A DNA stretch of 63,887 nt, counting the filler, from Octopus bimaculoides (lineage: Eukaryota), in assembly GCF_001194135.2 (NCBI RefSeq). It is 5 parts of 5 records of this genome, joined end to end, with 100 filler letters (N's around TTAATTAATTAA, not from the genome) between each part and the next. Parts side by side here need not be neighbours in the genome. Positions count along the whole stretch, not along the records: positions 1 to 27,486 come from NC_068988.1; 4 more parts are not named here. One strand, 5' to 3'. A program made the position numbers and the translations under genes. A model generated the notes under the pieces. That model was not told the origin of the DNA. It saw nothing but the letters and a program-made list of their open reading frames with translations, and did no database searches. Within the stretch, counting starts at the first letter, position 1; each line of letters starts with the position of its first letter. This document shows positions 1 to 45,914 of this stretch, in pieces.

Positions 1-111
1 AAATTTACAATTCAAGATTGATACATGCTTTGAATGAAAACAATTCTACTATGTCTGACATGATCTAAGCCCCCAGGTGAAAGAAAGCTCACCTTTATTA
101 TTAATATTATT

Positions 112-320
112 GAGGTGGTGAGCTGGCAGAATTGTTAGCACGCGGGGCGAAATGCTTAGTGATATTTCATCTGCTGCTACAATTCTGAGCTCAAATTCCG
201 CTGAGGTCAACTTTGCCTTTCATCCTTTTGGGGTCAATAAATTAAATAGCAGTGAAATCGACTTACCCCCTCCCCACAAATTTCAGGCCTTGTGCCTATA
301 GTAGAAAAGATTATTATTAT
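112..320 (+). mobile_element. tRNA-derived SINE with Meta-like core; further copies at 3547-3775, 9271-9490 (+) and ~8700-8885, 17870-17975, 28840-29050, 33420-33620 (-)
   Basis: Recurrent gagctggcagaa.gttagc...ttcaaattcc...gactttgcctttcatcctt.ggggtcgataaa core with a (TTA)n tail. Confidence 0.85.
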
Positions 321-1012
321 TAAATATTCTTTCGTTAGTTATTCTTAAGGGGTTAGTAAAAGTGACAAATAATTTCTTGTTTAATTTGCTGGATCTTCAG
401 ATTCCAGAAAATTACATGTATTTTTCTTTTATTAATTTGACATCTTTCTTTTCTGTAAACATTTTTAACATTCATTTCAAATTTTTCTTATACACACACA
501 CATACACAATATACCCATAAATATCTTTTATCATAAATTCAACTACCACCACCCCAGACGTAATAAGCTATATTTCCAGTATATATTTGTACTAAAGAGC
601 AATTTTCAACTTTTGCTACTAAATAACCTGGCCCTACCTATAAAAATGTTTCATTTATAGATATAAAATATTTTACACACCCAAGTTGCTAAAAAATATG
701 CATTAAAAAAATCATAGGCATTTGCCATTGTATTTTTTGTTTCATGCAAGAAACTGGTTCGATCATGACTCGACTGAATATATTACTGAGCTTGTTCATT
801 GTTGTGAGAATTAGGAAGATCAACCAGACACCTTTGAGAGAATATTAGTGACAGGAAATGTATAACGATACAACTTCAAACAATAATGCTTTATTGGTTC
901 AATTTTGTTAAATAGCCAAAACTGTTGATTCAGCCATTGTAGAAATACTTTTGCAAACACCAGAGTATGTTTAGTTTTTATACGAGATAGATAAATACAT
1001 ACATACATATGT

Positions 1013-1056
<44 letters not shown>

Positions 1057-2479
1057 CTGAACTGATTATTTAAGTTCACATGATAACCATTGGAGGGATT
1101 GTTAATATGACATTCCATTTAAAAGGTCTGTATTCTGTCTAGATAACAGTATGTTACTTTGTAGTTTTTAAATTAAATATATATATATATATATATATCA
1201 ACAAACAATTTCTGTTTTATTTTATCAAACACAAAATGAGTTTGATAAGACTGATTGTTTGTTGCTCCTGAGTAAAATATACAACTTGGCAACGATCATA
1301 TTTGCATAAGTTGCACAAAAAGTTCTTAGAAAGTCATTCTGGGTTTTATACGTGAAGCTAAGTCTCCCATAGGCTTTAATACACTAAAACCTTTATTTCT
1401 TTAATATGGGCTGCTGATATTAGGATATGTCTAATATGTCTGTGTGTCTTTTATGTCAACATCAAATACAGTAATAAAAGGAGCAACACAATAAACTCCA
1501 GGTTATAATAGGAAAACCGGTGTTCAAGACTAATGGTGAATAACATACAAAAGTAACAGTGATGTTGAGTAGAAAAAAAAAACATGAAGATTCATAAAGA
1601 AAAGGTTGTCAGGTAGAGTTCTCTCCAGTTTGAATAATTAAGGTTAGAACATGTAACTTCCAAACCAGCTTCAACCCGACAAACTATTTTCTCTGAGTCT
1701 GTTTTTATTCTCTTCATCTTTGAGACACAAATTCCTCCTCATCATCATCATATACACTGGTGACAAGCCAATCAAAGTATTCTTATCATAAAACCCTCTT
1801 TTGTCTTCTACTATTAGTTACTACACCAATGAAATACATGAGATACAGTTCACCAGCTTCACCATGTACGCAAATATATAAAACTGGTACATATATTGGT
1901 TATGATGATGAGTAGTGTTTCAGTTGATCTGATTAACAGAACAGCCTGCTCATGAAATTAATGAGCAAGTGGTTGAGTACTCCACAGACATGCATACCCT
2001 TAACCTTTTTGATACCAACCTGGTTGAAATCACATCTGGCCTTATAGTACAAATGTCTTGTTTTCAAAAGTTCTGAATTAATAACTTCCACCAAAACTTA
2101 GTCACAATTGATGTTCCTAACACTAGTTTAAAGATAACCAAGTTATTTTACTAAATTCTTTGTTGTATTTAAAATTAATTGAAAGAAACACAGAGCATCT
2201 CAACAGAAATATGGTAACAAAAGGGTCAACGTAGTTCTCAGGGAGATTCAGTGTGACACAGACTATCACAAAGCTGGCCCTTTGAAATGTAGATACCACT
2301 CATTTTTGCCAGCTGAGTGGATTGGAGCAATGTGAAATAAAGTGTCTTGCTCAAGAACACAACATGCTGCTGGGCATTGAACTCATGTCTGTACACTCAT
2401 GAACCAAACACTCCAACCACTAAGCCATTCACCTTCACACACAAATATATAATCAATATGAAAATATATAAAACTATGG

Positions 2480-3060
2480 AAGTATTCATTTTTTTGTTGT
2501 GTCTCAAACAGGACTTGTTCTATACCAAGTTCTACAACCATTTGACACAGATGTGCACTCATATTATTTGTTGTTATATGCCAACTGCAACAAGTTTTAA
2601 TACAAATGAGATTATTGATTGCAATTATAGATTATGTGTCAATAAAATACCTTGTTGATGTAATTAGGTCATAGGACCAGATTTCAGACAGGCAACAGCA
2701 GCCTTCAAAACAACTCGAGAAGTTTACGAATGGCAATGAAAGAACTCTGACATAAAAAAAAAAAAACACTGGCTGTTTAACCAATAAGTTAAACAAATGA
2801 AAGAGGTGGAATTGAACCTGTACATGTGTTATTATTATTGGCATGATGATTTTCTCAAGACACAACAAAATATCTTGTTGAGACATTCTAAAAATAGCTA
2901 GAGACACGAAAGTGAAAACTACTCTAAACAATAAACATTAACAAAAAAGCAAATTTTCAATCCACCCCCAGATTAATATGTACAAATGCAATGAGTCAAC
3001 ATTATTACACTCTCCTTCATTTTCTTTAGTTCGTCTGAGAAAGTGTTTCTCAACATAAAA
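2480..3060 (+). mobile_element. Highly decayed RTE LINE remnant
   Basis: Mixed frames give ..QATAAFK.., KTLAV and ..ILKIARDTKV.., resembling the RTE post-RT region. Confidence 0.45.
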
Positions 3061-3779
3061 TGAAATAAATGTGTGACATCNNNNNNNNNNNNNNNNNNNN
3101 NNNNNNNNNNNNNNNNNNNNNNNNNNNNNNNNNNNNNNNNNNNNNNNNNNNNNNNNNNNNNNNNNNNNNNNNNNNNNNNNNNNNNNNNNNNNNNNNNNNN
3201 NNNNNNNNNNNNNNNNNNNNNNNNNNNNNNNNNNNNNNNNNNNNNNNNNNNNNNNNNNNNNNNNNNNNNNNNNNNNNNNNNNNNNNNNNNNNNNNNNNNN
3301 NNNNNNNNNNNNNNNNNNNNNNNNNNNNNNNNNNNNNNNNNNNNNNNNNNNNNNNNNNNNNNNNNNNNNNNNNNNNNNNNNNNNNNNNNNNNNNNNNNNN
3401 NNNNNNNNNNNNNNNNNNNNNNNNNNNNNNNNNNNNNNNNNNNNNNNNNNNNNNNNNNNNNNNNNNNNNNNNNNNNNNNNNNNNNNNNNNNNNNNNNCTT
3501 CAGGTCTTGTTAGTGGATTTGGTGGATAGAAACTAAAAGAAGGGTGGTAACCCGGCAGAAACGTTAGCACGCCGGGCGAAATGCTTAGCGGTATTTCGTC
3601 TGCCGCTACGTTCTGAGTTCAAATTCCGCTGAGGTCAACTTTGCCTTTCATCCTTTCGGGGTCGATGAAATAAGTATTAGTTACGCACTGGGGTCGATAT
3701 AATTGATTTAATCCGTTTGTTTGTCCCCTCTGTGTGTAGCCCCTTGTGGGCAGTAAAGAAATAAGAAACTGAAAGAAGC

Positions 3780-3819
<40 letters not shown>

Positions 3820-3869
3820 CGTGCGCGCACGCATGTGTGTGTGTGTTACTATCTCCTTGCCTTGACATC

Positions 3870-4425
3870 AGGGGGTGTAGCCAGCCCACTTATGCGTACC
3901 TTTCCTTCATTGAACACTAAACTCCGCTTGCGAAGACCTGTTGAGGCAAGTGAAATCAAAATCGGACTAAATTCAATGACTGGCACACATGCCAATGTCC
4001 TCTCCTTCATTGGACACGAAACTTGGCTTGTGAAGACCTGTTGGGGCAAGTGAAAGCGAAATCGTGATGGCAACTGTGCCCAGCATCGCCTCCCTGGCAC
4101 TTGTGCCAGTGGCCCGTGAAAAAACATTCGAGCGAGGTCATTGCCAGTGCCGCTGGACTGGCTCCTGTGCAGGTGGCATGTAAAATACACCATTTTGAGC
4201 GTGGCCATTGCCAATACCTCCCGACTGGCCTTCGTGCCGGTGGCATGTAAAAGCACCCACTACACTCTCGGAGTGGTAGGCGATAGGAAGGGCATCCAGC
4301 TGTAGAAACCCTGCCAAATCAGATTGGAGCCTGGTGTAGCCATCTGGTTCACCAGTCCTCAGTCAAATCGTCCAACCCATGCTAGCATGGAAAGCAGACG
4401 TTAGACGATGATGATGATGATGACA
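3870..4425. repeat. Dispersed composite repeat ending in (GAT)n; related segments at 5520-6080 and 9625-9890
   Basis: Shared ggcatgtaaaaagcacccactacactctc...gtccaacccatgc.agcatggaaa..gacg.ta.acgatgatgat. Confidence 0.7.
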
Positions 4426-5236
4426 GCTCAGGATTAACGGTTGCAGACAAACTAATAAACAGATTCAGCCACATCTTTTTCTAAATGAGTTATTCATTAC
4501 CATTTTACTGAGAATCTAGCAGAGATGATGTTTAGCCTATTCCCACTATACCAGGAATACGGCATGACAGAATTAAAGTTATCAAATGTTCCGATAATTT
4601 CTAACAATTAATGATCTATTTTATACTTATGAAATATGCACTATACTAATTAATAATGAAGAATTAAACAGAAGGACAAGTTTGACTGTTTGTGGAAAAG
4701 TTGTTGGATCAGATGAAATTTTTATAGAGGCACTTGCAAATTTTTCACCATGCTAAACTTCTCTCGCAAATTATGTATTCCATAATCCTTGTAGATTATC
4801 CATCAGAAGAATGGAGAAACACTATAACAGTATAGTATTAATCCCAAATAAAGGAAACAGTAGTGTTCTAGAAAAATCACATCAGATTATCAATCATGTG
4901 TAGAAGTGTAAAAATCTTTAATCAAGTTTTTGTTGTATCTCGAGAGGGTCATTATGCCAATAATAAACACACACATTGGTTCTATTTCACTTCTTTTATT
5001 ATAATTAGTCAATTCACCAATGTTTAACCATTTGACTAATTGACTGATTGATAAATTGTTTGGTCAATCAATCAATCAGTTAGGTTTGTCAAAGACCTTA
5101 TGTCACCATTCATGACCTCATCAATGACTTACCCTCTCAACTCCAGGACAGTTTCAAGTCAGGCGCTTTTCACACAACGAAAATTAATTCTAGGTTCTTA
5201 GTATGGCTTCAGGGTAAATAAAAATACCACTGAAAA

Positions 5237-5322
5237 AATACTATAATTAAAGATATACTATAATTAAGTAATACTATAATTAAAGATATACTATAATTAA
5301 GCAATACTATAATTAACGATAT
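5237..5322. repeat. 33-bp minisatellite (~2.6 copies) built from 16/17-bp atactataattaa subunits
   Basis: aatactataattaaagatatactataattaag(t/c) starting at 5237, 5270 and 5303. Confidence 0.9.
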
Positions 5323-6440
5323 AAATAAAGAATATGTATTGAGAGCTGACACAAGAGAAAATACCATGTTGAGATAACATTTATGAACTTTTCTAAAGCA
5401 TTTGACTATGTAAACAGTACTGCAATTCAAACAAGCCTCAGGTCTTTATGAAATTTATTCCTGAACATTATTACGTCTTGTACACCACTACCAATGCCTT
5501 CATTGGTACTCTTGGCAACAATCATCATCATCGTCGTCATTTAATGTCTGCTTTCCATGCTAGTATGGGTTGGATGGCAAACTGGGAGGCTGCACCAGGC
5601 TCCAATCTGATTTGGTAAGGTTTCTACAGCTGGATGCCCTTCCTAACGCCAACCACTCTAAGAGTGTAGTGGGCACTTTTTACATTCCACCGGCATGGGA
5701 GCTAGTCAGGCGGCACTGGCATCAGCTTGCTTGAATGGTGCTTTTTATGTGCCACCGGCATGGTAGCCAGTCAGGTGGTACTGGTATTGGTTACACTTGA
5801 ATGGTGTTTTTTTACATGTCACTAGCACAGGTGTCAGTTAGGTGATACTGCCATCGGTCACACTCAAATGGTACTTTTTACGTCACCAGCACAGGTGCCA
5901 GTCAGGCAGCATTGACATCGGCCATGGCTACGATTTCACTCAGTTCAACAGGTCTTCACAAACAAAGCATATTGCCCGACAACTGAAGGGTGCTTTTAAA
6001 TGGGCCAGTTATGCAACACTGGCATCAGCCATGACTACAATCTCACTTGGCTTGTGGGTCTTCTCAGGTACAGCATATTTCCAAAGGTCTCAGTCGCTTG
6101 TCACTGCCTATAATTACACCCTGTCTTTTAATATTTTCTTTTGTCTTATTTGTTTCAGTCACTAGACTGAGGCCATGCTGGGGCACCATCTTGAAGGGTT
6201 TAGTTGAACAAATCAGCCCCAGTACTTATTTTAAGCCTGGTACTTGTTTTATCAGTCTCTTTTGTTGAAATGTCAAGTTGCAGGTATGTAACAAAACCAA
6301 CACTGGTTGTCATGTGATAATAATAATAACAATAACAAGAGCACTCAGAGAGCGTAAAACCTCTGCCAAGGCAACACCAATGTCCTCTCAACTATTACTT
6401 GTCCATAGGCTTGACCTGGAGAGATTCCCCGATCTCCAAC

Positions 6441-6620
6441 TTACACAACCTGTTGGGGAACGTTATTCCACAGATCCTTGGCAGCTTGTATACACAATAC
6501 TATTTTAGTCACTACCCAACATTCATGGCCATAAATGAGGATTGGTATAAAAACTGAACTGAAGATATCGAATTTTACTTTATAACCAACCTCATGTCTT
6601 CTGAGGTTTGAATACTGGTC
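6441..6620 (-). mobile_element. RTE LINE post-RT remnant
   Basis: KFDIFSSVFIPILIYGHECWVVT...IQAA matches the LxYGxExW motif. Confidence 0.7.
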
Positions 6621-7639
6621 AAAAGCAAACATGGCTGAATTACTATGGTGTAAGACCAATACCTAAAAGAAATGGTGGCTGATGTTCTTATACCAAAATA
6701 GGTTATTTCAAATGTCACAAGCCACCTTGCTTTCACAAAAAAGGAACATGTTACTACAGCAGATAGCAATGATATTAATTGTTTTAAAATGTTGAATTGA
6801 ACTGAATTCCTATGAATATAGTTTAAAAGAGAGATTTGCTTTACGTCACTGTGTCCTAGAGAGATAAGACATTATGACTCAATTGTTGACAGTAGCAATG
6901 AAGTTTCAAATGATTAGTTGTCTTAACACATGAATATGCAGAATACATACATACAAATGTACACACATAAATAGATAAATATGCACACATATACATACAT
7001 AGGCACACACACACATACTGATCCACACATGCGCACAAACAAACAAAAAGGAATGCAGTGTGAGTGACGGACAGAGTCAAAACTATTGAAAAGGTTGCAA
7101 GACGCAACGAAAATTTTAGAAAAACAAAAAAGAAATAAGTGGAAATTTTACCGGTGAATGTGTTAAATTATAAGGCACCAAAAGAGAATGACTCTCCCCA
7201 GACACAACAGGATCTACAAGAGGTTTTTTTTCACTTCTTTCTTATCAATTACATAAGCCATTTGTTGCTATAACCAGAAATTGTAAAGTCAACAAGGGAG
7301 AATCTATGAGGTTGCCTAGCTTGCTAGAAATAGCTACTAAATATTCCACATATCAAAACCTGCCATCTTAAAAAGAAAGACAGAGAATCACTATATTCGA
7401 AAAAAGAACAGATAGAAGACAGGATGGTCATGGCTGGGAATATGACTGATTTGGGAACTAAACACCAAGTAGGAAATGTTAAGAGGAGTTTTAAACCCAC
7501 CTCATATATGTAACATTGACAATATAGACAGCGAAAATGATGTCAAAGGCTTTTTATCAGAAAAAGAAGAATAGGTATTTGTGTGGAAAATAAGCATGAG
7601 ACCAAAAGTACACCTGACCTTCATATTTCTGCTACAATC

Positions 7640-8640
7640 AAGTCTCATCCAAGAAATATCACATACACCTTTGTTGCTTAGTCAGGTGGTGGAGAGTAAT
7701 GTCTTACTGAACTTGTTCTGTTCTGTCGTCATTCTATCATACTTTCACAACATCTCCACTCTTAATTAGGTCACCAAGCTTATGGAACCTATCAGTTACT
7801 ATGAATAAGCTTTCTGAGCAATCGAGTCTTTATTCCTTGTCGCATTTCCCCCTACTTCCTTTCTGCATATTGAGCATGAACAATTCTCAGTTGTTAATAA
7901 TGTATTGTATTTCTTTTTTCCCCATTTTTGTTGAAATGGTCTTTAGGTCTACACACTACTTCTATACCAGGAATTTTTCTTCTAATCCTCCGATTGATTC
8001 ATCTGAGAACCAAGTTGTCAGCACACAAGAATTTTTTCCTACATATGGCTTGGAAAGCTAAGTAATAAACAAGGGCACCTATATATTCTCATACAAAGAT
8101 CTGTGTAGCTCTTAAAAGCCATTCCTCTACCCTTAAGTTTTCTTAGCAACCATCAAACTACTGAGCATAAAACTCTGTCAAAGGTGAATTCCAACTCAAT
8201 AAACACTAGATACAATGGTTTGTCCTTGTCAAAAAACTTTTCTTGTAGATACCTCACTAAGAGGATATTGGTAATTTCAAGGAATAGCACAAACCCAAAG
8301 TACATCCCATGTCTAACCTAATTCTCTTCCTGACTGGCTTTGCTATAATTCTGTTTCTTTCATAATTTCATTAATTTAATGTTTGGATTTACTCGTTTCT
8401 AAAGCATCACTTTTGGCCTTGTAACAACTCATACTGCTGCCATAGCTGTTGCTGCTGCTGTTATGCCAATGATTGGGAATAATACCTTTCTGCACTATCT
8501 GATTAAATACAGGAGTAACCAAAACACATCCGATATCGTTAGATATTTTCAATATTTTGGTGACTATCTCTGGTGATCCGCCATCTTTCCCTACTTTTAT
8601 ATTCTTAATGGTTCTTTTTATCATACAGCAGTCAATCTTA
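7640..8640 (-). mobile_element. RTE-clade LINE, RT remnant
   Basis: KVGKDGGSPEIVTKILKIS...NQIVQKGIIPNHW...CYKAKSDALE, and further broken RT motifs toward 7.9 kb (FSDESIGGLEEKF). Confidence 0.8.
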
Positions 8641-10832
8641 ACAGTTGATCCTTCTGTTAGATCCTATTGGAATAAAACCACTTTTCCCTCACAATAATAA
8701 TCCTTTCTATTATAGGCACAAGGCCTGAAAAGTTTTTGGAGGAGGGAGCTAGTCAATTACATCGACCCCCAGGGCTCAACCTTGAAAGGATGAAAAGCAA
8801 AGTTGACCTCAATGGAATTTGAATTCAGAATGTAAAGACAGACAAAATACCACTGAGCATTTTGCCCAATATGCTAATGATTCTGCCAGCTAGAGATGGG
8901 AGCGATGACCTCCCCTTGCAAATACTTATTGGACATAGACTGCGTGTTCTTAGTCAGCTGGAGGAGATGTCTTCCTGGGGCTATAAGCATCAGTAGCACT
9001 GTCCTGTATAGGACACCACACTTAGTTGGCAAATATATATGTATATATGAATAGATAGAAAGATAGATAGACAGATAGCTTGGTGATAGGTTTAGCAAGT
9101 GAGATACTAGTTGAACACACATCATGGCAAGAAATGGAAATAAGAGCAGCTTTGTTTAACTCACTACTTCATCAAAACTAAAATTGGAGAGGAGGCTGAG
9201 GAAGTGAGTTGAAGTAAACCATCATTTACATCAGCATGGCCACAGCCTCAAGCCGACGATATATATATATGATGAACTGGCAGAAATGTTAGCACAGCGG
9301 GCGAAATGCTTAGTGGTATTTTATCTGTTTTTACATTCTGAGTTCAAATCTCACCGAGGTCGACTTTGCCTTTCATCCTTTTGGGGTCGATAAATTAAGT
9401 ACCAGTTATGCATTGGGGTCAATCTAATCAACTGCCCCCGCTCCCCACCCAAAAAATTGTGGCCTTTTGGCCTAGAGTAGAAAAGAATATGTATNNNNNN
9501 NNNNNNNNNNNNNNNNNNNNNNNNNNNNNNNNNNNNNNNNNNNNNNNNNNNNNNNNNNNNNNNNNNNNNNNNNNNNNNNNNNNNNNNNNNNNNNNNNNNN
9601 NNTATATATATATATATATATATGACTGGCTCCCATGCTTGTGGCATGTAAAAAAGCACTATCTGAACGTGATTGATGCCAGGCCTGCTTGACTGGTTGC
9701 GGTGCTGGTGGCATGTAAAAAGCACCCACTACACTCTCAGGGTGGTTGGCATTAGGAAGGGTATCCAGCTGTAGAAACATTGCCAGATCAGATTGGAGCC
9801 TGGTGCAGCCACTGGCTTTCGAGACCTCATTCTAACCGTCCAACCCATGCCAGCATGGAAAACGGACATTAAACGATGATGACGACGATGATCTTACTCT
9901 TAGACTCCCTTCAGTCACAAATGACCATGGAATTGCACCTAGGAGGTTCCTCTTTGAGGTACAAGCTCAAGCATGGTTATTTATGGAAGACCAGCAGTCT
10001 CCCATGTTGTCCATGGGAAAGGCAAAAGCTGATACAACTTGGTAGCAGTGACTTGCAACTCATTCCTACAGCTGAAATAAAGTATTTTGCTCAAGAACGC
10101 AACAAACAGCCCGGTCTGGGAATCGAACTTACAACCACACGATTTTAAGTTTGATGCTTTAACCACTGAGCCATGCGCCTTCACTATATATATGTGTACG
10201 TACTATGTATATGTGTGTGCGTGTACGCGCATGCGTCTGTTTGTGTAAGTGATCCTTCGGTACAGGTATACTGAATGTCGGTATAAGGAGAAAACGTCAT
10301 TAACCTTTTTTCAGCCTAGCCTCTTTATCTGTGTCATGAGGGTAGGTTGTGTGGGTGAATGACATAGTGTACCCGTATCGTAGGATTTTGCCTGTATAAC
10401 TGCGTCTTTTGTGTGTGTCCCCGTTTTCATGTGTGTATTTATGGAACAAATATATTTTTCAAATACTGTTTGAAAACACATAGGAACTAGAAAAATATGT
10501 TTGATTCAAATAAAAAATAGAAAAAAACCCCGATTCATTTCTACTTCCCTTACACACCAGGGATGACTCACAACAAATCCCAAACACGATATAGAAACGC
10601 AATCTGAAAATTCTTGTTTTCTAAACTGAATTTTCACTAGCCTCATTTTACAAGTTTCAGGCTTAATATAATTGTTTGTTAACACAAATGTGATAGCCTG
10701 ATGTTACAGGTGAAAGCATATGCGAGAGACACAATTCATTAAGTGTATTTAATAATCACAACTTGATGTTTGATTGCAGGATTGGTAACCCACCCAGTGT
10801 CGACAATAATAATAAATTTTCCAACATTTATT

Positions 10833-10917
10833 GGCGGAGGTAAAGAATATGCACACCACCTGTTTTCGGCGTCACCTTAACTCTAACCACTGGATGTGCG
10901 TATTCTTTACCTTCGCC
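10833..10917. mobile_element. 85-bp MITE-like element
   Basis: 23-bp TIRs ggcg(g/a)aggtaaagaata(t/c)gcaca with an internal ccttaactctaacc. Confidence 0.6.
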
Positions 10918-11493
10918 CATTCATTGAATTGTATTTGGTTGTCACTTAAAATTTTTCAGCCCCGCCTCCTGTTTTATTTTAATTCTTACCAATGTTATTT
11001 GAATTAACACATTTTTTTTTATCGTAGTATTTTATAGGTTTACTTTTTTTTGTAGTTCACTTCTTTCTCTACAACTTTTGTTCATCGTTTCTGAAATTTC
11101 AATAAATTTTACCTCTTTTCTAACATGATGAGATGTAGTTAGTGTCAAGTAGAAAAATGAAACAAAACAAAAACGAATGTATTTATCTGACATACCAATG
11201 AAAATAAGAAAGAAGCGGAAATTTTACTGGTGTGTGTGTTAAATTATAAGGCACAAAAAGAAAATGACCCTCCTCAAATACACCCAATAAAAGAAGTTTA
11301 TTATAAAATATTCTTTGTAACACTTTTAAAACTATAACTGCTACATTAATTTTTACTCTATGAAATTCATTTCGGTTTGTTCAGAATTTCCTAAAGGGGT
11401 GGGGAGAATGGATGAGGAGAGATGAAACAAGTAAACTAGAGGAATAAAGGAACTTCTCGGAGATCAGCATTGCTATAAAATCAGTTTTCTTAC

Positions 11494-11722
11494 CTACGAG
11501 ATTTCCAACACGATCGCCTAATCCAACATCAAGATTACGACTGCCTGCGAAGAGGCCAAAATATATGTATGCGTTCGTTTTATTAGCAGTCACATTGGCT
11601 ACATGAATTTCAGGACGAACCTCCACCCAGTGATCGGTTGTTAGAGAGGCAAAAAGACAACCAATTCCAACGACTATAATGAACAGGGTTACTCGAACAT
11701 AGTAACGTTTTGTCTTTTCCAT
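11494..11722 (-). CDS. CLRN: Clarin-family tetraspan protein, first coding exon (copy A; 76 codons + 1 nt)
   Basis: MEKTKRYYVRVTLFIIVVGIGCLFASLTTDHWVEV...YFGLFAGSRNLDVGLGDRVGNLV. TM1 followed by SLxTDxW and Y/FGLFxG...GLGxR matches clarin exon 1. NVT and NKT sequons lie in the first loop. Ends at phase-1 donor G|GTAAGA, the position and phase recalled for vertebrate CLRN intron 1. Paralog identity not assignable. Confidence 0.9.
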
Positions 11723-12725
11723 CTTGGATATCCAATTATGGTGCGTCTGCTCTGCTATAAGTTGTATTATTCCTTTGCCTGTTTCTTTAAAAAGTTTGTT
11801 ATTATCAAATAAGTTCTTGTTCCTAATGCCAGCAGGTGGTTGATAGTTATTTTTGATTACTGATTCGAATACAGTTCATAACAACTATCATTATTGTTGC
11901 TGCAGTTGAAATATATTTATAAGATCCTGTCGCGAGGACGACTGACCTCAACTACATGTTAAATAATACTTGTTATACTATCACTTGCGCACACACAGAC
12001 ACAATAACGTGTCGTCACAAGTTGAACAATATTAGGTATTCGCAGCTCAGCACATCCGCCTCACCTGCTTAACATCGACCGGACTACGTTCAACAGACCT
12101 ATATTGTCAACTAGTTTCACAATGCAATTTATACTAAACAGCAGTGGTGGCGGGGACACCTAAGTGCCATCAAGCAAAACAGATTACACATACACTCACA
12201 GGTCTCCACAAATACGCGCACACACACACACGTATTTATCATTCGTTGTCTGGTTTTCTTTTCATGTTTGCATGAGTTCGACGAATATCTCGCGATATTG
12301 CCCCATCTGGCGCCAGCGCTACCTATATATATATATATATATATATNNNNNNNNNNNNNNNNNNNNNNNNNNNNNNNNNNNNNNNNNNNNNNNNNNNNNN
12401 NNNNNNNNNNNNNNNNNNNNNNNNNNNNNNNNNNNNNNNNNNNNNNNNNNNNNNNNNNNNNNNNNNNNNNNNNNNNNNNNNNNNNNNNNNNNNNNNNNNN
12501 NNNNNNNNNNNNNNNNNNNNNNNNNNNNNNNNNNNNNNNNNNNNNNNNNNNNNNNNNNNNNNNNNNNNNNNNNNNNNNNNNNNNNNNNNNNNNNNNNNNN
12601 NATATATATATATATATATATATAATATAAATTGAAATTGGCAACAGGAAGGGCATCTGGCTGTAGGAAATCTTTCTCCATAAATTCCATCTGAATCATA
12701 CAGGCATGGAAAGTCGACACTAAAA

Positions 12726-13050
12726 TGGTGATGATGGCGGTGGTAGTGATGATGATACTGATGATGATGACAACGATGATGATAATGATGATGAGAATGG
12801 TGATGACGATGATGACAATGACGATGGTGATGACGATGATGGCGATGATGACGGTGATGATGACGATGATAATGACAATGATGATGATAGTGGTGATGAT
12901 GACGATGCTGATGACGATAATGACAATAACAATGATGATGACAATGATGATGATGACGACAATGATAATGACGGTGATGATGACGATGATGATGACGATG
13001 ATGATGTGATAATGATGACGACAATGATGACGATGACGATGATGATGATT
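12726..13050. repeat. Degenerate (GAT/GAC/AAT)n trinucleotide array
   Basis: ~325 bp of gatgatgac/aatgat units. Explains the His-, Ser-, Met- and Ile-rich spurious ORFs. Confidence 0.95.
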
Positions 13051-13924
13051 GTATATAATTGACTCACACCCATATATGGAAGGTGAAAAGCGGACGATAT
13101 CAGCAGAGGCATACAAAGTGACTGACTAACTACGACTGCAAAAGTACAAATCGAATGTATTTTAGTTGCTGCCCCCACCCCCCATTACCTCCTTGCTTGT
13201 TGTCCTTACCATTGGAGTTTTAATTCCAACCTGTATTACCTTGCTATTCACTGCATTACATTGACAAATCAACATGTTGTCATGACAATCATTAATCTAT
13301 TGCATATCATTATCTCTTCAGGCAGGTTGTAGTCAATTTTATATATNNNNNNNNNNNNNNNNNNNNNNNNNNNNNNNNNNNNNNNNNNNNNNNNNNNNNN
13401 NNNNNNNNNNNNNNNNNNNNNNNNNNNNNNNNNNNNNNNNNNNNNNNNNNNNNNNNNNNNNNNNNNNNNNNNNNNNNNNNNNNNNNNNNNNNNNNNNNNN
13501 NNNNNNNNNNNNNNNNNNNNNNNNNNNNNNNNNNNNNNNNNNNNNNNNNNNNNNNNNNNNNNNNNNNNNNNNNNNNNNNNNNNNNNNNNNNNNNNNNNNN
13601 NNNNNNNNNNNNNNNNNNNNNNNNNNNNNNNNNNNNNNNNNNNNNNNNNNNNNNNNNNNNNNNNNNNNNNNNNNNNNNNNNNNNNNNNNNNNNNNNNNNN
13701 NNNNNNNNNNNNNNNNNNNNNNNNNNNNNNNNNNNNNNNNNNNNNNNNNNNNNNNNNNNNNNNNNNNNNNNNNNNNNNNNNNNNNNNNNNNNNNNNNNNN
13801 NNNNNNNNNNNNNNNNNNNNNNNNNNNNNNNNNNNNNNNNNNNNNNNNNNNNNNNNNNNNNNNNNNNNNNNNNNNNNNNNNNNNNNNNNNNNNNNNNNNN
13901 NNNNNNNNNNNNNNNNNNNATATA

Positions 13925-14190
13925 TAGGCGTAGGAGTGGCTGTGTGGTAAGTAGCTTGCTTACCAACCACATCATTCCAGGTCCAGTCCCACTGCGTGGC
14001 ACCTTGGGCAAGTGTCTTCTACTATAGCCTCGGGCCAACCAAAGCCTTGTGAGTGGATTTGGTAGACTGAAACTGAAAGAAGCCTGTCGTATATATGTAT
14101 ATGTATGTGTGTGTGTTTTTGTGTATCTCTGTTTGTCCCCCCAACATCGCTTGACAACCGAAGCTGGTGTGTTTAAGCCCCCATAACTTA
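13925..14190 (+). mobile_element. Second SINE family; inverted or partial copies at ~15290-15440, 27785-27930, 40870-41050, 43130-43300, 55260-55420
   Basis: Recurrent gcaccttgggcaagtgtcttctactatagcctcggg...aaagccttgtgagtggatttggtaga..gaaactgaaagaagcc. Confidence 0.85.
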
Positions 14191-15129
14191 GAGGTTCAAG
14201 TTATTGTCAATTTTAAGCAACTTTCTTGAACCATCTCTTCTTATGTATCCCCAAAGCATCAAACTCTTACCCCACAAACTTCACTGTTTTTGTCATGTAA
14301 CAAGGGTCGTTTTGCTTTCTAATAAGTGAGAATTTGTCAGAAGGCCTCCAGGAAACTGCACGGCTGCAAAGCGAGCTTCTTAACCACACAGCCATGCCTG
14401 CACCTATGTAATGGAAAAGGTAATACCCCACAGGATGGTGAGGAAGACACGCCAGAGAACAGCCACACCAATTCATAGCACTCACACTTGCAGACAGCCA
14501 TCTCTGCCCTGAGAGCAGTAAGTTGGGATGCATCATTCTATATTTTTGAGATGAGGAATTCTGTACATTATTTACATTGGACAGATATGTGTCCTCATCT
14601 TGTTTGTTGTAAATAATGTAAATCATGTACAGAATTCAATCCAGCTCTCTGTATGGGTTGGTGGGGGAAGAGATTGTTCTCATATGTTTCGCTGAGCACT
14701 TAAAACATACACATTCCAATAGTCTGTATAAGTTGTATTCAAGAAAAAGAAACATAAGTTGAAAACCCTTTCGAATATTTTGAATAAATAAGGTAGTAGT
14801 ACATTAAGTGCAGAGGCCAACGATTTCGATATTTATTCAGAGATTTCGACTCTCTTTAGATTAAACAACAAACTATTTGAAAATGTAGAATGTGCTTAAA
14901 CAAATCCTTTCTTTTATAAACAATCACAAAATGTAGATCACTTGTATTACGAAAGCAAATCAATAATACATACCACAGCAATATCATACGAAATAGTTTA
15001 AACAACACAAATTATAAAGATTCTTCTAAGAGATATATCCCAAATGTTGGATCTTTCCTTTCGTCAAAGCATACAAACAACCCATAGCTATCATTATCAA
15101 GCAAGTATGTCTTGGTAGCATGAATAATA

Positions 15130-15164
<35 letters not shown>

Positions 15165-15776
15165 CTTTTACTCTTTTACTTGTNNNNNNNNNNNNNNNNN
15201 NNNNNNNNNNNNNNNNNNNNNNNNNNNNNNNNNNNNNNNNNNNNNNNNNNNNNNNNNNNNNNNNNNNNNNNNNNNNNNNNNNNCACACATACACAATGGG
15301 CTTTTTTTTCAGTTGGTATCTACCAAATCCACATGCAAGGCTTTGGTCAGCCCAACGCTGTCGTAGAAGACATTTGCCCAAGGTATCACACAGTGGAACT
15401 GAAACTGGAACCATGTGTTTGGGATGCATGCACCTTACCACACAGTTGTATCGAAAACCTTTTCAGGCTTGTACTAAATTATTTCCTCCACTATCTCCCT
15501 CGCCACCACACACACCCAGCCATCATGTATTGTAATGAATATAATATAGTTACGTTTTCTAAACTCTGTTAAACAAAACTTAAATAAATTTTCGTTTTAC
15601 TGCTTTTTACTTGCACTGATCTGTAAATACAGTGGTTTATGAGAAAAATTCTGTCAACAATTTAGGTAAGATGCATTTCCTGTGTTCTGAATAACGCTCG
15701 GAATAACGCTTCATTAAATGAAAGAAAAAAAAATCATAGTTCCTGATTAGTTTAGAATTCCAACCCATACCATTAA

Positions 15777-15990
15777 ATAATGATGATGATTGTGACAATG
15801 ATGACGATGATGATGATGATGATGAAAATGATGATGATGAGCATAATGATGATGATGTGTATAATGATGATGATGATGATGAGCATAATGATGATGAGCA
15901 TAATGATGATGATAATAGTGATGATGATGATGATGACGATGATGGTGATGGAATGATGGGTTGTGGTGGTGATGCTGATGATGATGAGGA
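15777..15990. repeat. Degenerate (GAT)n array
   Basis: Direct inspection. Confidence 0.95.
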
Positions 15991-16639
15991 TTAACTGAAA
16001 CATATGAGAAGGAGGTGGAATGGATATTTTAATTAGAAATACATTAAAGAAAGAATTAGATAAAATTTTTAAAATAGACGCTTCTCTTACAATGTTTATA
16101 ATTCTGATTTTGCTTCTCTCATTTAGAATGCAGAACTTCCAACTAATTAAAACTCTCCATGTCAAAAATTAACATGTAGCAAGTGTTGCAAAATGATTAG
16201 TTGTCATGTAGCCAAGTGGTTAGGGTGTTGCACTTATGATTGCAAGATCGTGGTTTCAATTCCAAGACCAGGTGGTGCATTGTGTTCTTGAGCAAAACAT
16301 TTCATTTCACACTGCTCCGTTCCATTCAACTGTAAATGAGTTCCAGCAATATCTGGGAAGTTAACCCTGAGATGGACTGGCATCCTGTTCAGGGGGAATG
16401 GTGTCATCTCTGTCACTTATATGCCATAGAAACCAGTTTACTGACCCTTTGAGTCCAATGACTTGATATAGTACCTGCTTTACTTATTCGCTGATGTAAC
16501 AAAATTTTCAGAAAACTACAAACTTACATCTCTTGACAAATATATCAAGACAAAGAGACTCAAACATACACACACTCACACAAACACATATATGCATACA
16601 TATATACATATGTACATACTTATGTACATACATACATCC

Positions 16640-17860
16640 GTACATGGTGGTTGTCTACTCCTTGTGCAGAGTTTGACCACCTCCTGTACTTACATCTTAG
16701 AACCATCATGGTATCTGATGTGGCTTTTTAAACCAGACAATGTTCTGAAAAGACACCCACATAGATTGCATTTCCAATCTGGACCGTCAAGAGCTGCAGA
16801 TAAGTTCTGCTCTTTGTATATCTTAAAATGTCTTTTGAGGCCTCCGTTGGATTTGCAAACCTCCAGGCATACACTGCATTCAAAGGTGTGCACAGACATA
16901 TAGTCAGAATAGTTGATGGAAGTTCATTTTCCATGGGTTTGCAAATGAGATTTGAGCCCAGCAAAAGAAAGGCATGGTCTGTCACAAGTTGTGCACACAA
17001 AAAGGTCATTGTCATTCACCTTCTTGATCGTAACATTCTTCCTTAGATCTCGTTGGAGTCTTACATGCGTTATCCTGACCTCTTCAAACGCTTTCACTCC
17101 ACTCCACCCTTTTGTTTGCCATCCAGCTCGATCTGAAGCAAAGCTTTCTATGTCTTCTGGAACCATTCCAAGTGACTTCATAGTAGTCCTTATGCCGCCC
17201 TTAAACCTTTTTTTAGGTTTACGCCGATAGCATTCCCCCACTGCAATAATAATAAATAATAAATGCACCCTTTTAAAGCCTAGCCAGGCTTATGGGCCCG
17301 GTTTCCCAGTTTCTATGGTGTATGTGTTTCCCAGCTGGACAGGACACCAGTCTATCGCAGCGTTACTCATTTTTGCCAGCTGAGTGGACTGAAGCAACGT
17401 GAAATGAAGTGTTTTGCTAAAGAACACAATGCGTTGCCCGGTCCAGGAATTGAAACCACAATCTTACGATCATGATGCTGACACCCTAACCACTAAACCA
17501 CGTGCCTTCCCCCCTCTGCAAGCTCAACTTAAAACAGCTGTTTCGGCATGCGTCCATCTACCATTTGAATAATATCTCATTTGGTTCCTCAAAATCATAG
17601 CTTTAATTAAGCTGATGCCTGCAGATGCAGGGACATCTGTGTTTGGAGTAAAAGAACTCCATTTAATGTTTAAAATGTGATGAAGGCATTTTTGGTGGAA
17701 TTGTTTAAACAATTTAAAATGCCTTTCATAACAAGTCCATGTTTCACAAGAATACAACAAGGATGGTAAGACAAATGATTTGTAAAGAGCCAGCTTTGTA
17801 TTGTTATTTATATGTTGCTGGCACCAAACGCATGACTCCAAGCCACCAAATGCTTTTGCT
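16640..17860 (-). mobile_element. RTE LINE 3' end with C-terminal C2H2 fingers, interrupted by a SINE
   Basis: KLALYKSFVLPSLLYSCETWT...FHQKCLHHILNIKW (17524-17841), then RRKPKKRFK...CTTCDRPCLSFAGLKSHLQTH and two more CxxC...H units in a shifted frame (16690-16899). Confidence 0.85.
17246..17506 (-). mobile_element. tRNA-derived SINE nested in the RTE, with ~13-bp target-site duplication
   Basis: Head with A box TGGTTTAGTGG and B box GTTTCAATTCC, (TTA)n tail. Flanks ttcccccactgca (17233-17245) and ttcccccctctgca (17507-17520). Confidence 0.85.
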
Positions 17861-19764
17861 GCTCTTTGAATTCACAGATGCATTTCTGTATTTAAACTCA
17901 GAATGTAAAGACAGATGAAATGCTGCTAAGAATTTTGTCCAGCTTGCTAACATTTCTGGCAGCTCACCATCTTGATACAAATAAATATTAGTTGGTCCCT
18001 ACAGTCATGGAAAAAGTTTAGGTTAAGGATCGTTTGGAAATTTTATTTGATTCAGCACATGAGTTTAAGAAGTATAAAGATCTTTTGTTGAGGTTTTGAT
18101 TTGGAGAAACTTAAGATACTTTGATTTGAAAATAATATAATTAAATTTCAAAATATAATAGAGTTTAGAGTAATGAAATTGAAGCTGGGAATAACCTGTG
18201 CCTTAGTTATTGTGTCATCATTCATTTGTTCATTAGATAATTCTTTCTAACAGAAACATGAAACATTAAGAGTTTTTAGTGGTAAAGAAATGTAGATTTG
18301 TGTCTTATAATAAGTCTACAAAAATACAACATTAATTCATTGAATTTCTATTGATTTAAGATTAACAACAAGAGTGAAATAAAGCAATAATAATTGGAAC
18401 TGCCACCAGTTCTTAAATGGAGTTTTTTAAAGAATTTAGTGTTGCATCATGGAACTTACAGTACAAAGTCTCTATTACAAGGACAGAGAAATGAGATTGT
18501 GCAGTATATATATGTTTCCTTATAATATGTCACACAATCAACATTATAGAAGATGTAAGTCTTTAATGTACCATTTAATGTTAACACAAATCTTAATTTT
18601 ACAAGAATGGAAAAATGAGATATGCTGTACAATCACCAGTGAAGTCCAAATAGAACCTGTGCCCTGTTTGTAGTTTACCAGTGCCCTTTCACGAACCCTA
18701 ACGAAAATGCTTTGAATTGAACATCCTTCTGAAAATCTTCATCCCCAAAACGAATGAGAGATGAGATATTTTTGGACTGATTTGAAACACTAATTTTCCA
18801 TTATTGGATTTATCTGATTTGATCGATGTCCAAATATAATAATAATTGTTATTATTATATCTGTGTTTGTTTTGATATTAAGAATGAAAAAAAAAAAAAT
18901 CAACTTCGTAAAACATTTTGGACCTGGCTTTGCGTCTCTTTAGCAAATTTCGTTTCCCGCACGTGTGGAGAAAATACGCAAAACCTAGAATCTATTTGGG
19001 AAAGATTCCATCCATCAATTTGGAATGTGGTATTTTAGACGAGAACTCAAAGTTCAAATTAGGTGAGTGTATTAATGAAAAGAATCTCCGAAGTAACCAG
19101 ATACAGAATATAAAATTAATAGGTGTCTAGAATAGGTAGGCTGGATTATTATTTATCTTTCATTAACCAATGCAGGGGAAGAGAGATAATTTCGTTTGTT
19201 TTATTTTTTATACTTATACGTAACCTTGTTCTTTTTTTCTTGTTTTATACTTTTTGGTCACACAGTGTCTACTAACAATGGTAACAGTTGAAAAGATACG
19301 AGGATCATGTAATTATAGGTGGGGAAAGTCAGAGAATACACTTCGAGATATTATTATCTTCTAGAGAGAATTATATTAAATACAACCAAATTAATTTAAA
19401 CAAATTGTGATAAAAGAGATATTTTAAACATAAATTATGGTGAGCATTACACAGCAAGAGATAAGTTCTCAGTAATCTAAGACTGCGACAGGAGTTCAAC
19501 TGTCAATTAACATCGCTCATGATTGGAGACAGGAATCTCGTCACTTGACATTTATCAAAAATAAAGATTTTCTGTGAAGTAATCAGGAGAACTAATATAC
19601 TTTAAAAACTAAATTTATGTTGTTCTCTTAAACATTTTACAATTCAAACTCAACAAGTTGAAAGTATTTGGGTTGCATAGATATTTTAAACAGAAATTGG
19701 TAAAATCTGAAAAGGAAACAAATAACAATGATAATAATGAGTAGAAAACCTTTAGATTTCTCAC

Positions 19765-20002
19765 CTATTATTTTCGACAAACGATCCCCTAGTCCGTAGT
19801 TCAGCATTATACCACCTCTAAATAGTCCATAATGTATAGAACCTCTATATCGCCGTGTATCTGTTGCGTTGTTTTCTCCTATTAAGAGTTTTGGATGGAC
19901 ACACACCCAGTAATCTGTAGCTAAAGACATCATTAATGTGACGGTACCAACTGTAATAAATAACAGTGTAAAGCCAACAAACGGACGCTTTTTCTTCTCC
20001 AT
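19765..20002 (-). CDS. CLRN: Clarin-family tetraspan protein, first coding exon (copy B; 79 codons + 1 nt)
   Basis: MEKKKRPFVGFTLLFITVGTVTLMMSLATDYWVCV...HYGLFRGGIMLNYGLGDRLSKII. Same clarin motifs, NAT sequon and phase-1 donor G|GTGAGA at the homologous position to copy A. Confidence 0.9.
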
Positions 20003-20231
20003 TGATTAGATGTCAAACTTGTTCAAGTGATTCATTTACATTAGCTCCTTTTTTTTGTCTTGTCTTATAAAAACATATATCGTAAAGGAATCAACAATTA
20101 TTCTCCCTTCATTTATGATTCTGTCAGATTTTTCCGCCTGTAATTTCTAATTTTGTTGTCTAGATGTTAATTATTTCCTCTGGAACACGACCTTATTACC
20201 ATGACGATGATATATATTTTAAATAAACGAA

Positions 20232-20496
20232 ATAATTAATGAGTTCATTGATCTATTGTAACGCAGTTTCTCTCTCGTGATATAAGTTATCCTCTTCATT
20301 AGATTCAATATATGACAATACTCGCTGACCTGACCCAGAGAACTGAATTGAACAAACTAACGCTTTAAACTAAAAGTCTTAACTGTTTACGTATATTTAC
20401 ATTGATACAAGTAGTCAACGGATGATGCTAACTGTTATCATTGATCGTAGTATCTCTCAGGTTAATCAATTCACCTGTGACTTCTCACTCATTAAC
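20232..20496. promoter_or_regulatory. Candidate POU4/Brn3 sites and E-box upstream of clarin copy B
   Basis: ATTAATGAGT (20235-20244, reverse complement ACTCATTAAT) and ACTCATTAAC (20487-20496) both match RCTCATTAAY. CACCTG at 20472-20477. Confidence 0.4.
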
Positions 20497-21719
20497 ACGA
20501 TCTATTTATTTAGTAAATCCGAAAGTTAATGAAGTCGGTTACGAAATTTAATATATTAATTCAAATGGTTAAAATAATCCAGTTTTCATTATGTTAACGG
20601 GATTAAAAAGAGTACAAAAATCGTATAAAATTTGATCTGTTTATTATTTACAATGAGAAAAGCTAAATTGTAAGAAGTGATTATGTTAAACGAAATACTG
20701 TGCTAAGCCAGACACAAGACTAGATTTTAGAATGTTGCTGTTTTATCCTACATATAATAACCCAAGGACAAAGCTAATAGTTTAAACTTATTTAGTTCTC
20801 TAATCATCCAAAAACTATAGTTTATCTGCTGTTTTTCTCTTCTTTCTTTGGTGTAGACGTTGCCTTTCATCTCTCCAACTGTAATAAAATAAGTACTGTC
20901 ATGTACGGGAGTTGCTTCAATCGACTGTATTCTTCCTTGGATTAACAGGATCGTTAGAGCTACTTATACCGAGTTCAAATACTGCCAAGGTCAAGTTTAC
21001 TTTGTATCCTTTCAGGGTCAATAAAATAAAATACCAGTCAATACTGGGTTCGTTTGGTTATTTCATATAAAAGTATCATGATGTGAATGGAATAACAATG
21101 GAAGATTAAAATCAAGGCTTCTTTTTGCTACATATTTGTGGCTATGGGCAAAAGAAATCGTCATCATAATCGTCATCATCATCGTCATCATCATCGTCAT
21201 CATCATCATCATCATCATCATCTTTGCAGTTGTATTTGTAATTGTATGGTAGAGAGAGATTAGATAGCTGAAAGATGACCTAAAGGCTTTAAAGTAATGG
21301 TTCTTAAACTAAGTTATTCAAACACATTCTAGTTGGTCACAAGACTTTTTTTTCCCCCCCTGACGACCCCAAATAATTAAACTTCCAAAATTAATCCCAC
21401 TTATAAGATTATCAGTAGAATAAGCTGATTAGAATATCAGCTTAAAAAAAGAACAATGAAAAAAAGGATAAAAAGCTACTACTTCAAAGTATGCATATTG
21501 TTTTGTCCTTTACTCATTTAAAATAAATCCTGCTAAAGTTGTGTAGTGAAACTAACACCTCGATCGCCATTACATACAAAACTACCTATCGCCATTAGAT
21601 ACAAAACTACTATCGCCATTCTTCCCATTTAAATATAAACAAACGCGGGCGTAGCGGAGAACCCATTCCTTGTCATCACATGACTGATTATTATTCGAAG
21701 CGGCAACTTCTTCGAACCG

Positions 21720-27486: not shown

Positions 27487-27586
27487 NNNNNNNNNNNNNN
27501 NNNNNNNNNNNNNNNNNNNNNNNNNNNNNNTTAATTAATTAANNNNNNNNNNNNNNNNNNNNNNNNNNNNNNNNNNNNNNNNNNNN

Positions 27587-27693
27587 ACATATGTTTCAAA
27601 GGATTACAACCTATGTGATCCATAGGGATCTGTGATATTAAAATTGTAACATCCCTATGGATCACATAGGTTGTAATCCTTTGAAACATATGT
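27587..27693. repeat. Perfect 43-bp inverted repeat with 21-nt spacer at a contig edge
   Basis: 27587-27629 is the exact reverse complement of 27651-27693. Confidence 0.9.
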
Positions 27694-40590: not shown

Positions 40591-41335
40591 AAAATCCTTA
40601 TGTTGTGTTACATGAAGATATTACACTACTGCCCCTGCCACCCCCACCCCTCTCAAGCTGTCAGACATACTGTAACATAATTTTTCCTTCACTCGCTTTT
40701 GGTCGCTTGGTGTATATTAGCAAGTGATTGTAACAAACATGCAGGCTAAAAATAAANNNNNNNNNNNNNNNNNNNNNNNNNNNNNNNNNNNNNNNNNNNN
40801 TTAATTAATTAANNNNNNNNNNNNNNNNNNNNNNNNNNNNNNNNNNNNNNNNNNNNATATATATATATATATATATACAATGAGCTTCTTTCAGTTTCCG
40901 TCTACCAAATCCAATCACAAGCTTTGGTCGGCCCAAGGGTATAGTAGAAGACACTTAGTGAAAGTGCCACGCAGTGAGACTGAACCTGGAACCATGTGGT
41001 TGGTAAGTAAACTACTTACCACACAACCACTCCTGCACCTCCCATACAGCCACTCCTACACACACACATGTATATATCTGTGTATAAGATAGGCTTCACT
41101 ACAGTTTTATCGGCTCTAGAATGAAGGAAATTAACTTTACCTTAGTGATAATTGAACTCAGAATACTGATATACCAATTTAGTTCCAATAAAACGTTCAG
41201 CTTCCATCTATTTTTACCCTTTATCTCATAATAAATTATAGCAAACTTTTCTTTTTGCAACAACTTTTTAATTATATATTCTGTTTTGTAATTTGAAATC
41301 TGAAATAATTTTTAAAATTGTAAAACATATCTCAC

Positions 41336-41392
41336 CTCTTTTGGTAATGGACATTGTAGCCTTCATCCACACTGTTGTGTAATGTGTAAATC
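41336..41392 (-). CDS. Candidate further cytoplasmic exon, 57 nt
   Basis: Acceptor attctgcag, donor AG|gtgaga. Open in the required phase 2: (Q)IYTLHNSVDEGYNVHYQK. No family motif confirms it. Confidence 0.45.
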
Positions 41393-42560: not shown

Positions 42561-42621
42561 TGTCCATCTGAAAAAAACAAATTGGTTCCAGGATATTCAT
42601 CTTCAGTTTTATGATTTGATT
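42561..42621 (-). CDS. Cadherin cytoplasmic exon, 61 nt, phase 1 to 2
   Basis: Acceptor tcattgcag, donor CA|gtatgt. (Q)SNHKTEDEYPGTNLFFSDG, phase-compatible. PGTN..DG resembles the recalled P(N/G)TN...DG(A/S)NP motif of CDH23/Cad87A-type tails. Confidence 0.8.
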
Positions 42622-42798
42622 CTGCAATGATATGATTATTAAATAATGACTATAGTTTTCTTTGACAGATAAATGTCTTTCTTGCATTGAATACACAGAC
42701 AAACACAGTTTAGAATACTTTAACAAAATAGAACATACAAAATTAAATTATTAAAAGAAAATGCAAAAATGGATGTGAAGTGATCATCAGTTCAACTA

Positions 42799-42836
<38 letters not shown>

Positions 42837-44736: not shown

Positions 44737-44777
44737 GATTTATAGTGGTTTTAGCTGCTCTTAATTCCCTGACATAT
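44737..44777 (-). CDS. Cadherin juxtamembrane cytoplasmic exon, 41 nt, phase 2 to 1
   Basis: Acceptor tatttctcttcag, donor C|gtaagt. (R)YVRELRAAKTTIN, phase-compatible with the TM exon and resembling the recalled RKLKA motif of CDH23-type tails. Confidence 0.8.
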
Positions 44778-44836
44778 CTGAAGAGAAATAGAATAAGCAG
44801 TGAACAGACAAATAAATATATCATTGTGTGTGTGTG

Positions 44837-44881
<45 letters not shown>

Positions 44882-44989
44882 TAGTGGAAATGTTTGTTCT
44901 CCAACAATAAATGTATTGGGTTGGCAACTAAGATCCCGCCGTTTTTTAAAATTTTAATTTTTTAAAAGCTTTAATAAAAAATAACAACT

Positions 44990-45890: not shown

Positions 45891-45914
45891 CTACAACTAT
45901 ACAATGGAATATTT

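Follow-up and report, generated by a model that had tools for sequence, protein, structure and literature searches.

Our combined findings suggest that a single clarin gene of Octopus bimaculoides very probably carries two alternative first coding exons, paralogous to each other and arranged in tandem, in front of one constant gene body. Both first exons lie on the minus strand of the stretch of DNA analyzed here, referred to as the window (63,887 nucleotides including filler, joined from five parts of RefSeq assembly GCF_001194135.2, with positions 1 to 27,486, the part of concern here, taken from NC_068988.1). The exon that comes first in the direction of transcription is called B, and the one 8.3 kb downstream of it is called A. 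A transcript starting at B would splice over A to exon 2, and a transcript starting at A would need its own start site within intron 1 of the B transcript. The architecture of the gene, the compatibility of its splice sites, the conservation of the arrangement among octopods and the presence of coding constraint on both exons could each be established by comparison of loci and proteins.

The coding part of exon B occupies positions 20002 to 19765 (238 nt, or 79 codons plus 1 base), with its ATG at 20002-20000 and the GT of its 5' splice donor at 19763..19764 (ATAATAG|GTGAG, phase 1). That of exon A occupies positions 11722 to 11494 (229 nt, or 76 codons plus 1 base), with the ATG at 11722-11720 and the donor GT at 11492..11493 (CTCGTAG|GTAAG, phase 1). 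Each exon ends with the first base of a split valine codon, and both are stop-free open reading frames (ORFs) starting with MEK(K/T)KR. A preliminary description of this DNA, which reported two stop-free clarin exon-1 ORFs 8.3 kb apart on the same strand, placed them correctly, and its estimate by hand of about 40% identity (31/79) is close to the BLASTP result of 34/79 identities (43%; E 1e-19). This similarity is far above chance and, at the level of sequence, marks A as a diverged paralogue of B. The shared features that had been listed were also found in both exons, namely the tryptophan W32 that follows the first transmembrane segment (TM1), the (F/Y)GLF and GLGDR motifs, the phase-1 GT donor and N-glycan sequons (N45AT in exon B, N43VT and N47KT in exon A). 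Exon B codes for the N-terminus, TM1 and the larger part of extracellular loop 1. The interval between the two exons (11723..19762), which would be intron 1 of the B transcript, is devoid of clarin coding sequence, and positions 1..11491 hold the first 11.5 kb of the intron that both transcripts would have in common. A tblastn search of window positions 1-27486 on both strands with full-length clarins found neither exon 2 nor exon 3, in agreement with the earlier failure to find these exons between the copies or downstream of A. A search of the window, of 10 kb of sequence upstream of B and of all introns of three octopods yielded no further first exon or body exon, with the exception of a second A-type exon in Argonauta.

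The gene body lies shortly beyond the window. The window is 100% identical, gaps included, to a locus on O. bimaculoides chromosome CM046608.1 (GCA_001194135.2; locus L002, in which a position equals 30003 minus the window position), where B is found at 10001-10238, A at 18281-18509, the start of exon 2 at 34462 and exon 3 at 35872-36141. Counted leftward from window position 1, this puts the start of exon 2 at 4.46 kb and the end of exon 3 at 6.14 kb (about -4459 for exon 2 and about -5869 to -6138 for exon 3 in window numbering), beyond a gap of 1297 N. The preliminary description had supposed that A and B share an exon 2 situated to the left of the window, and proposed a search for clarin exons 2-3 over a wider region. 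A single body is present 4.5-6.1 kb to the left, with one acceptor that fits both donors, and both products are present in RefSeq. At this acceptor (...tatttcag|TGAGCCAG), the terminal G of either first exon completes a GTG valine codon, and the reading frame runs on. The donors of the first exons all read G|GTRAG and are in phase 1, and the acceptor reads cag|TG, a combination that is compatible in three species. The position and phase of the exon B donor are the same in O. sinensis, in the species of locus L001 and in Argonauta, and an ATG together with a G|GTRAG phase-1 donor is kept in every first exon of all species compared. O. bimaculoides has one exon 2 and one exon 3, as does each octopod examined. 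A single constant region is preceded, on the same strand, by two or more homologous first exons in tandem, including in two gap-free loci, and each of these first exons has its own start codon and a donor in phase with the acceptor of the one constant exon 2.

A search with the body peptide retrieved two O. bimaculoides proteins whose sequences coincide fully beyond exon 1. The B form is clarin-2 isoform X1 (XP_052825960.1; P0002 in our protein collection), a protein of 229 amino acids whose residues 1-79 match the exon B peptide exactly. The A form is clarin-2 isoform X2 (XP_014786516.1; P0138), also present in UniRef as A0A0L8FWH5 under the name 'Clarin-3', a protein of 226 amino acids whose residues 1-76 match the exon A peptide exactly. 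The two are identical from residue 80 (B form) or 77 (A form) onward. O. sinensis likewise has an X1/X2 pair, with a B form (XP_029640341.1) and an A form (XP_029640342.1), the latter identical to O. vulgaris CAI9726900.1. In Argonauta hians the B form is named 'clarin-2-like isoform X1', and an A form was not among the matches. When exon-1 peptides alone were used as queries, a word-index search gave no match for exon A and only one genomic read-through ORF for exon B; an exhaustive profile search with the exon-1 alignment recovered the full-length proteins. The two-isoform design is thus already in RefSeq as computational predictions. The preliminary description knew of no such report for clarins, and this holds for the literature, in which we found no paper on clarin in octopus or cephalopods or on clarin with alternative first exons; it does not hold for the annotation. 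The RefSeq models bear no record of the paralogy of the exons, the third copy in Argonauta, the single first exon of cuttlefish or the unequal rates of evolution. Both isoforms match the Pfam family Clarin-2-like (PF25807) above its cut-off of 27, with 65.4 bits for X1 and 54.2 bits for X2. Of the exon-1 peptides taken alone, that of B reached a sub-threshold 22.3 bits and that of A gave no match. In exon maps from four cephalopods the coding sequence is divided among three exons, the first of which encodes TM1 and loop 1; the main human CLRN1 isoform is organized alike (PMC11414144).

The arrangement was found in the other octopods. In the gap-free locus of O. sinensis (L005), B starts at 10001, A at 33848, exon 2 at 69033 and exon 3 at 72068. 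The gap-free locus of Argonauta hians (L003) has three first exons leading onto one body, with B at 10001, two A-type exons at 20805 (A1) and 27540 (A2), exon 2 at 40941 and exon 3 at 45128. A1 (20805-21040) and A2 (27540-27775) are both intact and lie in a duplicated segment of ~560 bp that is 92% identical between copies, with a synonymous divergence (dS) of 0.058 and a nonsynonymous divergence (dN) of 0.023. The ORF and donor of exon A are intact in O. sinensis and O. vulgaris, in the species of locus L006 (probably the same species as that of L001, judging from neighboring run accessions) and in both Argonauta copies. In the O. vulgaris locus (L004), B was not found within 10 kb upstream of A, in keeping with the distance of 23.8 kb between the two exons in O. 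sinensis. Intron 1 overall ranges from 24 kb in O. bimaculoides to 78 kb in cuttlefish.

The cuttlefish Acanthosepion pharaonis (L008) has one first exon, at 13695, followed by exon 2 at 91598 and exon 3 at 93491. Its locus is gap-free over 104 kb, and no A-type exon was found in it. Downstream of the clarin gene and on the opposite strand lies a Cdc25-like phosphatase gene (Pfam M-inducer_phosp and Rhodanese), at 40432-46141 in the O. bimaculoides locus, 80409-82337 in that of O. sinensis and 102294-103766 in that of the cuttlefish. This neighbor occupies the same position in Octopus and cuttlefish, so that the synteny of the clarin locus is conserved. Since the syntenic, gap-free cuttlefish locus has one first exon, the exon duplication most likely took place in the octopod lineage, before the split between Octopus and Argonauta. 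A neighbor-joining tree placed the decapod exon together with B (76% bootstrap) and united the A-type exons in a separate clade (93%). Taken literally, this tree would place the duplication before the decapods, a reading that we rejected on two grounds: the cuttlefish locus contains a single first exon, and the rapid evolution of A points to a long-branch effect. In the scenario that we favor, B would have kept the ancestral-like sequence and A would have diverged quickly, to be duplicated once more in Argonauta. Separately, three assembled cuttlefish-type sequences (P0005, P0152 and P0153, from Logan contigs) join exon 1 to an unrelated 43-residue tail (…DEIF|DLGVSKLFFPM…) rather than to exon 2, and this tail may be an alternative splice product or a mis-assembly.

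A calculation of dN/dS for each exon, another step proposed in the preliminary description, gave different results for the two. Exon B has ratios of 0.23-0.38 across four octopods, compared with 0.09-0.22 for the body (exons 2-3 of O. bimaculoides, O. sinensis and Argonauta), and judging from these alignments it is clearly under purifying selection. For exon A, the ratio is 0.78 between O. bimaculoides and O. sinensis and 0.71-0.96 in comparisons with the L006 species. Against Argonauta it is about 0.15-0.2, with dS saturated and the ratio only indicative.

Several of our results weigh against the use of both first exons. Within Octopus, exon A looks near-neutral (0.7-0.96), its nucleotide identity between O. 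bimaculoides and O. sinensis is 86.5% compared with 88-95% in its flanks, and in the L006 comparison exon and flanks are about equal (78% and 78-79%). In O. sinensis and O. vulgaris its GLGDR motif has changed to GNGER. Exon A may accordingly be weakly constrained or little used in some species. Octopus transcript contigs of either isoform were not found in the protein collection, where the octopus clusters consist of genome-derived models only and cuttlefish are represented by many spliced clarin contigs. The RefSeq X-isoforms are themselves predictions, and the only support for the promoters, the conservation upstream of the exons described below, is of uncertain meaning. These observations fit an alternative in which just one of the first exons is in use and its counterpart (most likely A, otherwise B) is a little-used or decaying duplicate that entered RefSeq as an isoform through homology-driven prediction. 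We nonetheless consider this alternative unlikely. Exon A has no stop and no frame-breaking indel, and it retains its ATG, frame, sequon and donor and the W, FGLF and G-x-G-(D/E)-R positions in four lineages (O. bimaculoides, O. sinensis/O. vulgaris, the L006 species and both Argonauta copies). It is free of indels, whereas its flanks carry 3-8 indel events per ~500 bp, and random substitution would usually break its ORF, with simulated chances of survival of 0.28, 0.13 and 0.026 in three comparisons. Moreover, both the older O. bimaculoides model XP_014786516.1 and O. vulgaris CAI9726900.1 begin with exon A, and the purifying selection on B argues against B being the decaying copy. The retention of ORF, ATG, sequon and donor without indels, while the flanks have accumulated them, thus suggests that exon A is a maintained coding exon with rapid amino-acid turnover, under selection that is either relaxed or diversifying.

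If both exons are used, each would probably have its own promoter. Both begin with an initiator ATG with no acceptor-like tract before it, and the sequence upstream of each is conserved, with a mean column identity in three-species alignments of 92% upstream of B and 88% upstream of A. On the basis of this conservation, we predict the 5' untranslated region (UTR) and core promoter of the B transcript at 20003..20250 and those of the A transcript at 11723..11950, both on the minus strand. Since an A transcript would start inside intron 1 of B, the interval 11723..19762 must hold its promoter and 5' UTR. The alternative that A and B are mutually exclusive internal exons, following a shared non-coding exon 0 and served by one promoter as in Dscam, appears very unlikely. 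Nothing positive speaks for it, the coordinates to hand being those of coding sequence only. A convincing polypyrimidine-AG acceptor adjoining the ATG was not seen for B or for A, either in the upstream sequence or in the three-species alignments; the 60-80 nt before each ATG are purine-rich instead. Both exons also start with an initiator ATG in the manner of the first coding clarin exons of cuttlefish and other molluscs. Both forms are presumably expressed, probably in different cells or at different stages.

Two further observations concern the region upstream of B. The purine-rich sequence contains TATA-like motifs (GATATATGT(A/T)T..ATAAG) ~55-75 nt before the ATG, which we set aside as promoter evidence since the sequence is AT-rich. 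It also contains a minimal upstream ORF (uORF; ATG TAA, 20041-20036) followed by a 9-codon uORF (20035-20006) whose end lies 3 nt ahead of the main ATG. In O. sinensis and in the L001 species, these uORFs have preserved their ATGs, frame and stop, and they are relevant only if the 5' UTR reaches this far.

Three assembly gaps (12347-12601, 13347-13919 and 15184-15283) fall inside the B-A intron, and neither exon is touched by them. On both sides of the gap stretch, the loci of O. bimaculoides and gap-free O. sinensis are colinear. Window positions 16214-12226 (~4 kb), which hold the gaps, correspond to ~19.8 kb in O. sinensis (L005 13490-33333), and the spacing of B and A is ~8.3 kb in O. bimaculoides compared with about 23.6-23.8 kb in O. 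sinensis. The difference of ~16 kb may be either sequence missing in the gaps or sequence inserted in O. sinensis. The block 12602-15183 is reversed relative to O. sinensis (83% identity over 505 bp, 94-95% over 749 and 218 bp), and flipping the whole block would restore colinearity. As it is bounded exactly by gaps, this probably reflects mis-orientation during scaffolding rather than a true inversion. As far as can be judged from these alignments, continuity and orientation across the gaps are not reliable. The preliminary description considered that exons of B might be hidden in these gaps, A and B then being two separate tandem paralogues, and the estimated sizes of the three gaps together with the ~16 kb deficit, which would mean that sequence is probably missing, leave room for such exons; we nevertheless regard this as barely credible, given that the full B-A intervals of gap-free O. 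sinensis (23.6 kb) and Argonauta hians contain no match to exons 2 or 3 even at E=10 and that exons 2 and 3 occur exactly once in each species.

Within the B-A intron, positions 16690-17841 on the minus strand contain disrupted ORFs that match C2H2 zinc fingers (Pfam zf-C2H2, 32.8 bits). Next to them, an ORF with no Pfam match has a '...LLYSCETW...' motif that we take to be typical of LINE ORF2 tails, and together these ORFs are probably a decayed retroelement. Imperfect (TGATGA)n/(ATG)n microsatellites at 12747-13049, 15780-15991 and 21157-21222 account for long, spurious ORFs rich in His, Ile or Met. The window also has dispersed repeats, at 116-318, 3543-3703, 4081-4423, 5521-5924, 8693-8891, 9270-9892, 13940-14081 and 15304-15445, which are copies of 130-350 bp in both orientations, 74-87% identical and SINE-like in appearance. 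A tRNA scan of the window was empty.

At the protein level, what distinguishes the B and A forms is TM1, ~50 residues of extracellular loop 1 and the short N-terminal segment on the cytoplasmic side. The preliminary description had expected isoforms differing in TM1 and the extracellular loop only, which is borne out by the identity of all residues after exon 1, with the addition of the short N-terminus. Hydropathy analysis yields four membrane segments per isoform, with TM1 at residues 9-27 and TM2-TM4 encoded in exons 2-3. Both isoforms thus have the layout of clarins, with four transmembrane segments and a large first loop carrying a predicted N-glycosylation sequon. AlphaFold2 models of the two isoforms (mean pLDDT 79.5 and 80.2, pTM 0.73 and 0.75) both run from helix 1 through four strands in exon 1 and a short helix to three long helices and a further strand. 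In a Foldseek search with the predicted model of mean pLDDT 79.5, the top matches were GARLH4, TARP gamma-5/2/8, GSG1L, MP20 and claudin-3/4/19 (E 7e-7 to 1e-4, TM-score 0.5-0.75). The models therefore place the protein in the claudin/TARP/PMP22 fold class, in which a four-helix bundle is joined to an extracellular beta-sheet formed mostly by loop 1. Since the layout encoded by exon 1 (TM1 and four strands) is the same in both models, the choice of exon would swap TM1 and four strands of the sheet without altering the remainder of the bundle or the C-terminal tail. The swapped parts differ in composition. The loop encoded by exon 1 has a ratio of K+R to D+E of 7/3 in B and 4/4 in A, with one sequon in B, two in A and a loop cysteine in B only. 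The gene would thus likely produce two clarins with the same membrane core and tail and with different extracellular and TM1 contact surfaces, which we expect to differ in function.

Clarins are small four-helix membrane proteins that are needed at vertebrate hair-cell and photoreceptor synapses and whose partners are poorly known. Partner or ion specificity in claudins and TARPs is determined by the part of the protein that comprises TM1 and the extracellular sheet. A naturally occurring pair of isoforms in which this part alone is exchanged identifies it as the tunable part of clarin. Furthermore, with one first exon in cuttlefish, two in Octopus and three in Argonauta, the gene offers a comparative system for exon duplication, the birth of alternative promoters and asymmetry of evolutionary rates. 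A bolder reading of the same counts, which we put forward only as speculation and hold to be rather improbable, is that octopods possess a small, still-expanding cluster of variable clarin first exons, with the younger A-type exons under diversifying and not just relaxed selection, and cell-type-specific promoters providing sensory or neural cells with different extracellular heads upon a shared core. If true, this would be a miniature, lineage-specific counterpart of the diversity of surface proteins generated by variable exons.

With respect to known systems, the preliminary description likened the two first exons to those of vertebrate clustered protocadherins. In clustered protocadherins and UGT1A alike, homologous first exons stand in tandem before one set of constant exons, each equipped with a start codon and a donor of its own, and the octopus clarin gene shares this variable-first-exon logic. 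However, those clusters have tens of variable exons, compared with only 2-3 in octopods, and the variable part of octopus clarin is a helix and one loop rather than the whole ectodomain that varies in protocadherins. Nor is there support here for stochastic promoter choice. In design, the closest precedent is not protocadherins but claudin-10, with its alternative exons 1a and 1b giving claudin-10a and claudin-10b. Claudin-10 is also a four-helix membrane protein and belongs to the same fold class as octopus clarin, although to the claudin and not the clarin family. The exon swap in claudin-10 switches paracellular charge selectivity. That in octopus clarin likewise alters the charge of the loop, as given above, with a functional effect known only for claudin-10. 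Claudin-18.1/18.2 is organized in the same way. Within the clarin family itself, human CLRN1 has several isoforms with extra or alternative exons, such as exon 0b (PMC11414144). The variants described there do not include a duplicated TM1/loop-1 exon, whereas octopus clarin has one. As the isoforms are already in RefSeq and claudin-10 provides a close precedent, our results mainly confirm and extend the annotation and do not establish a new principle. Octopus clarin is thus a computationally annotated, previously undescribed case of a known gene design.

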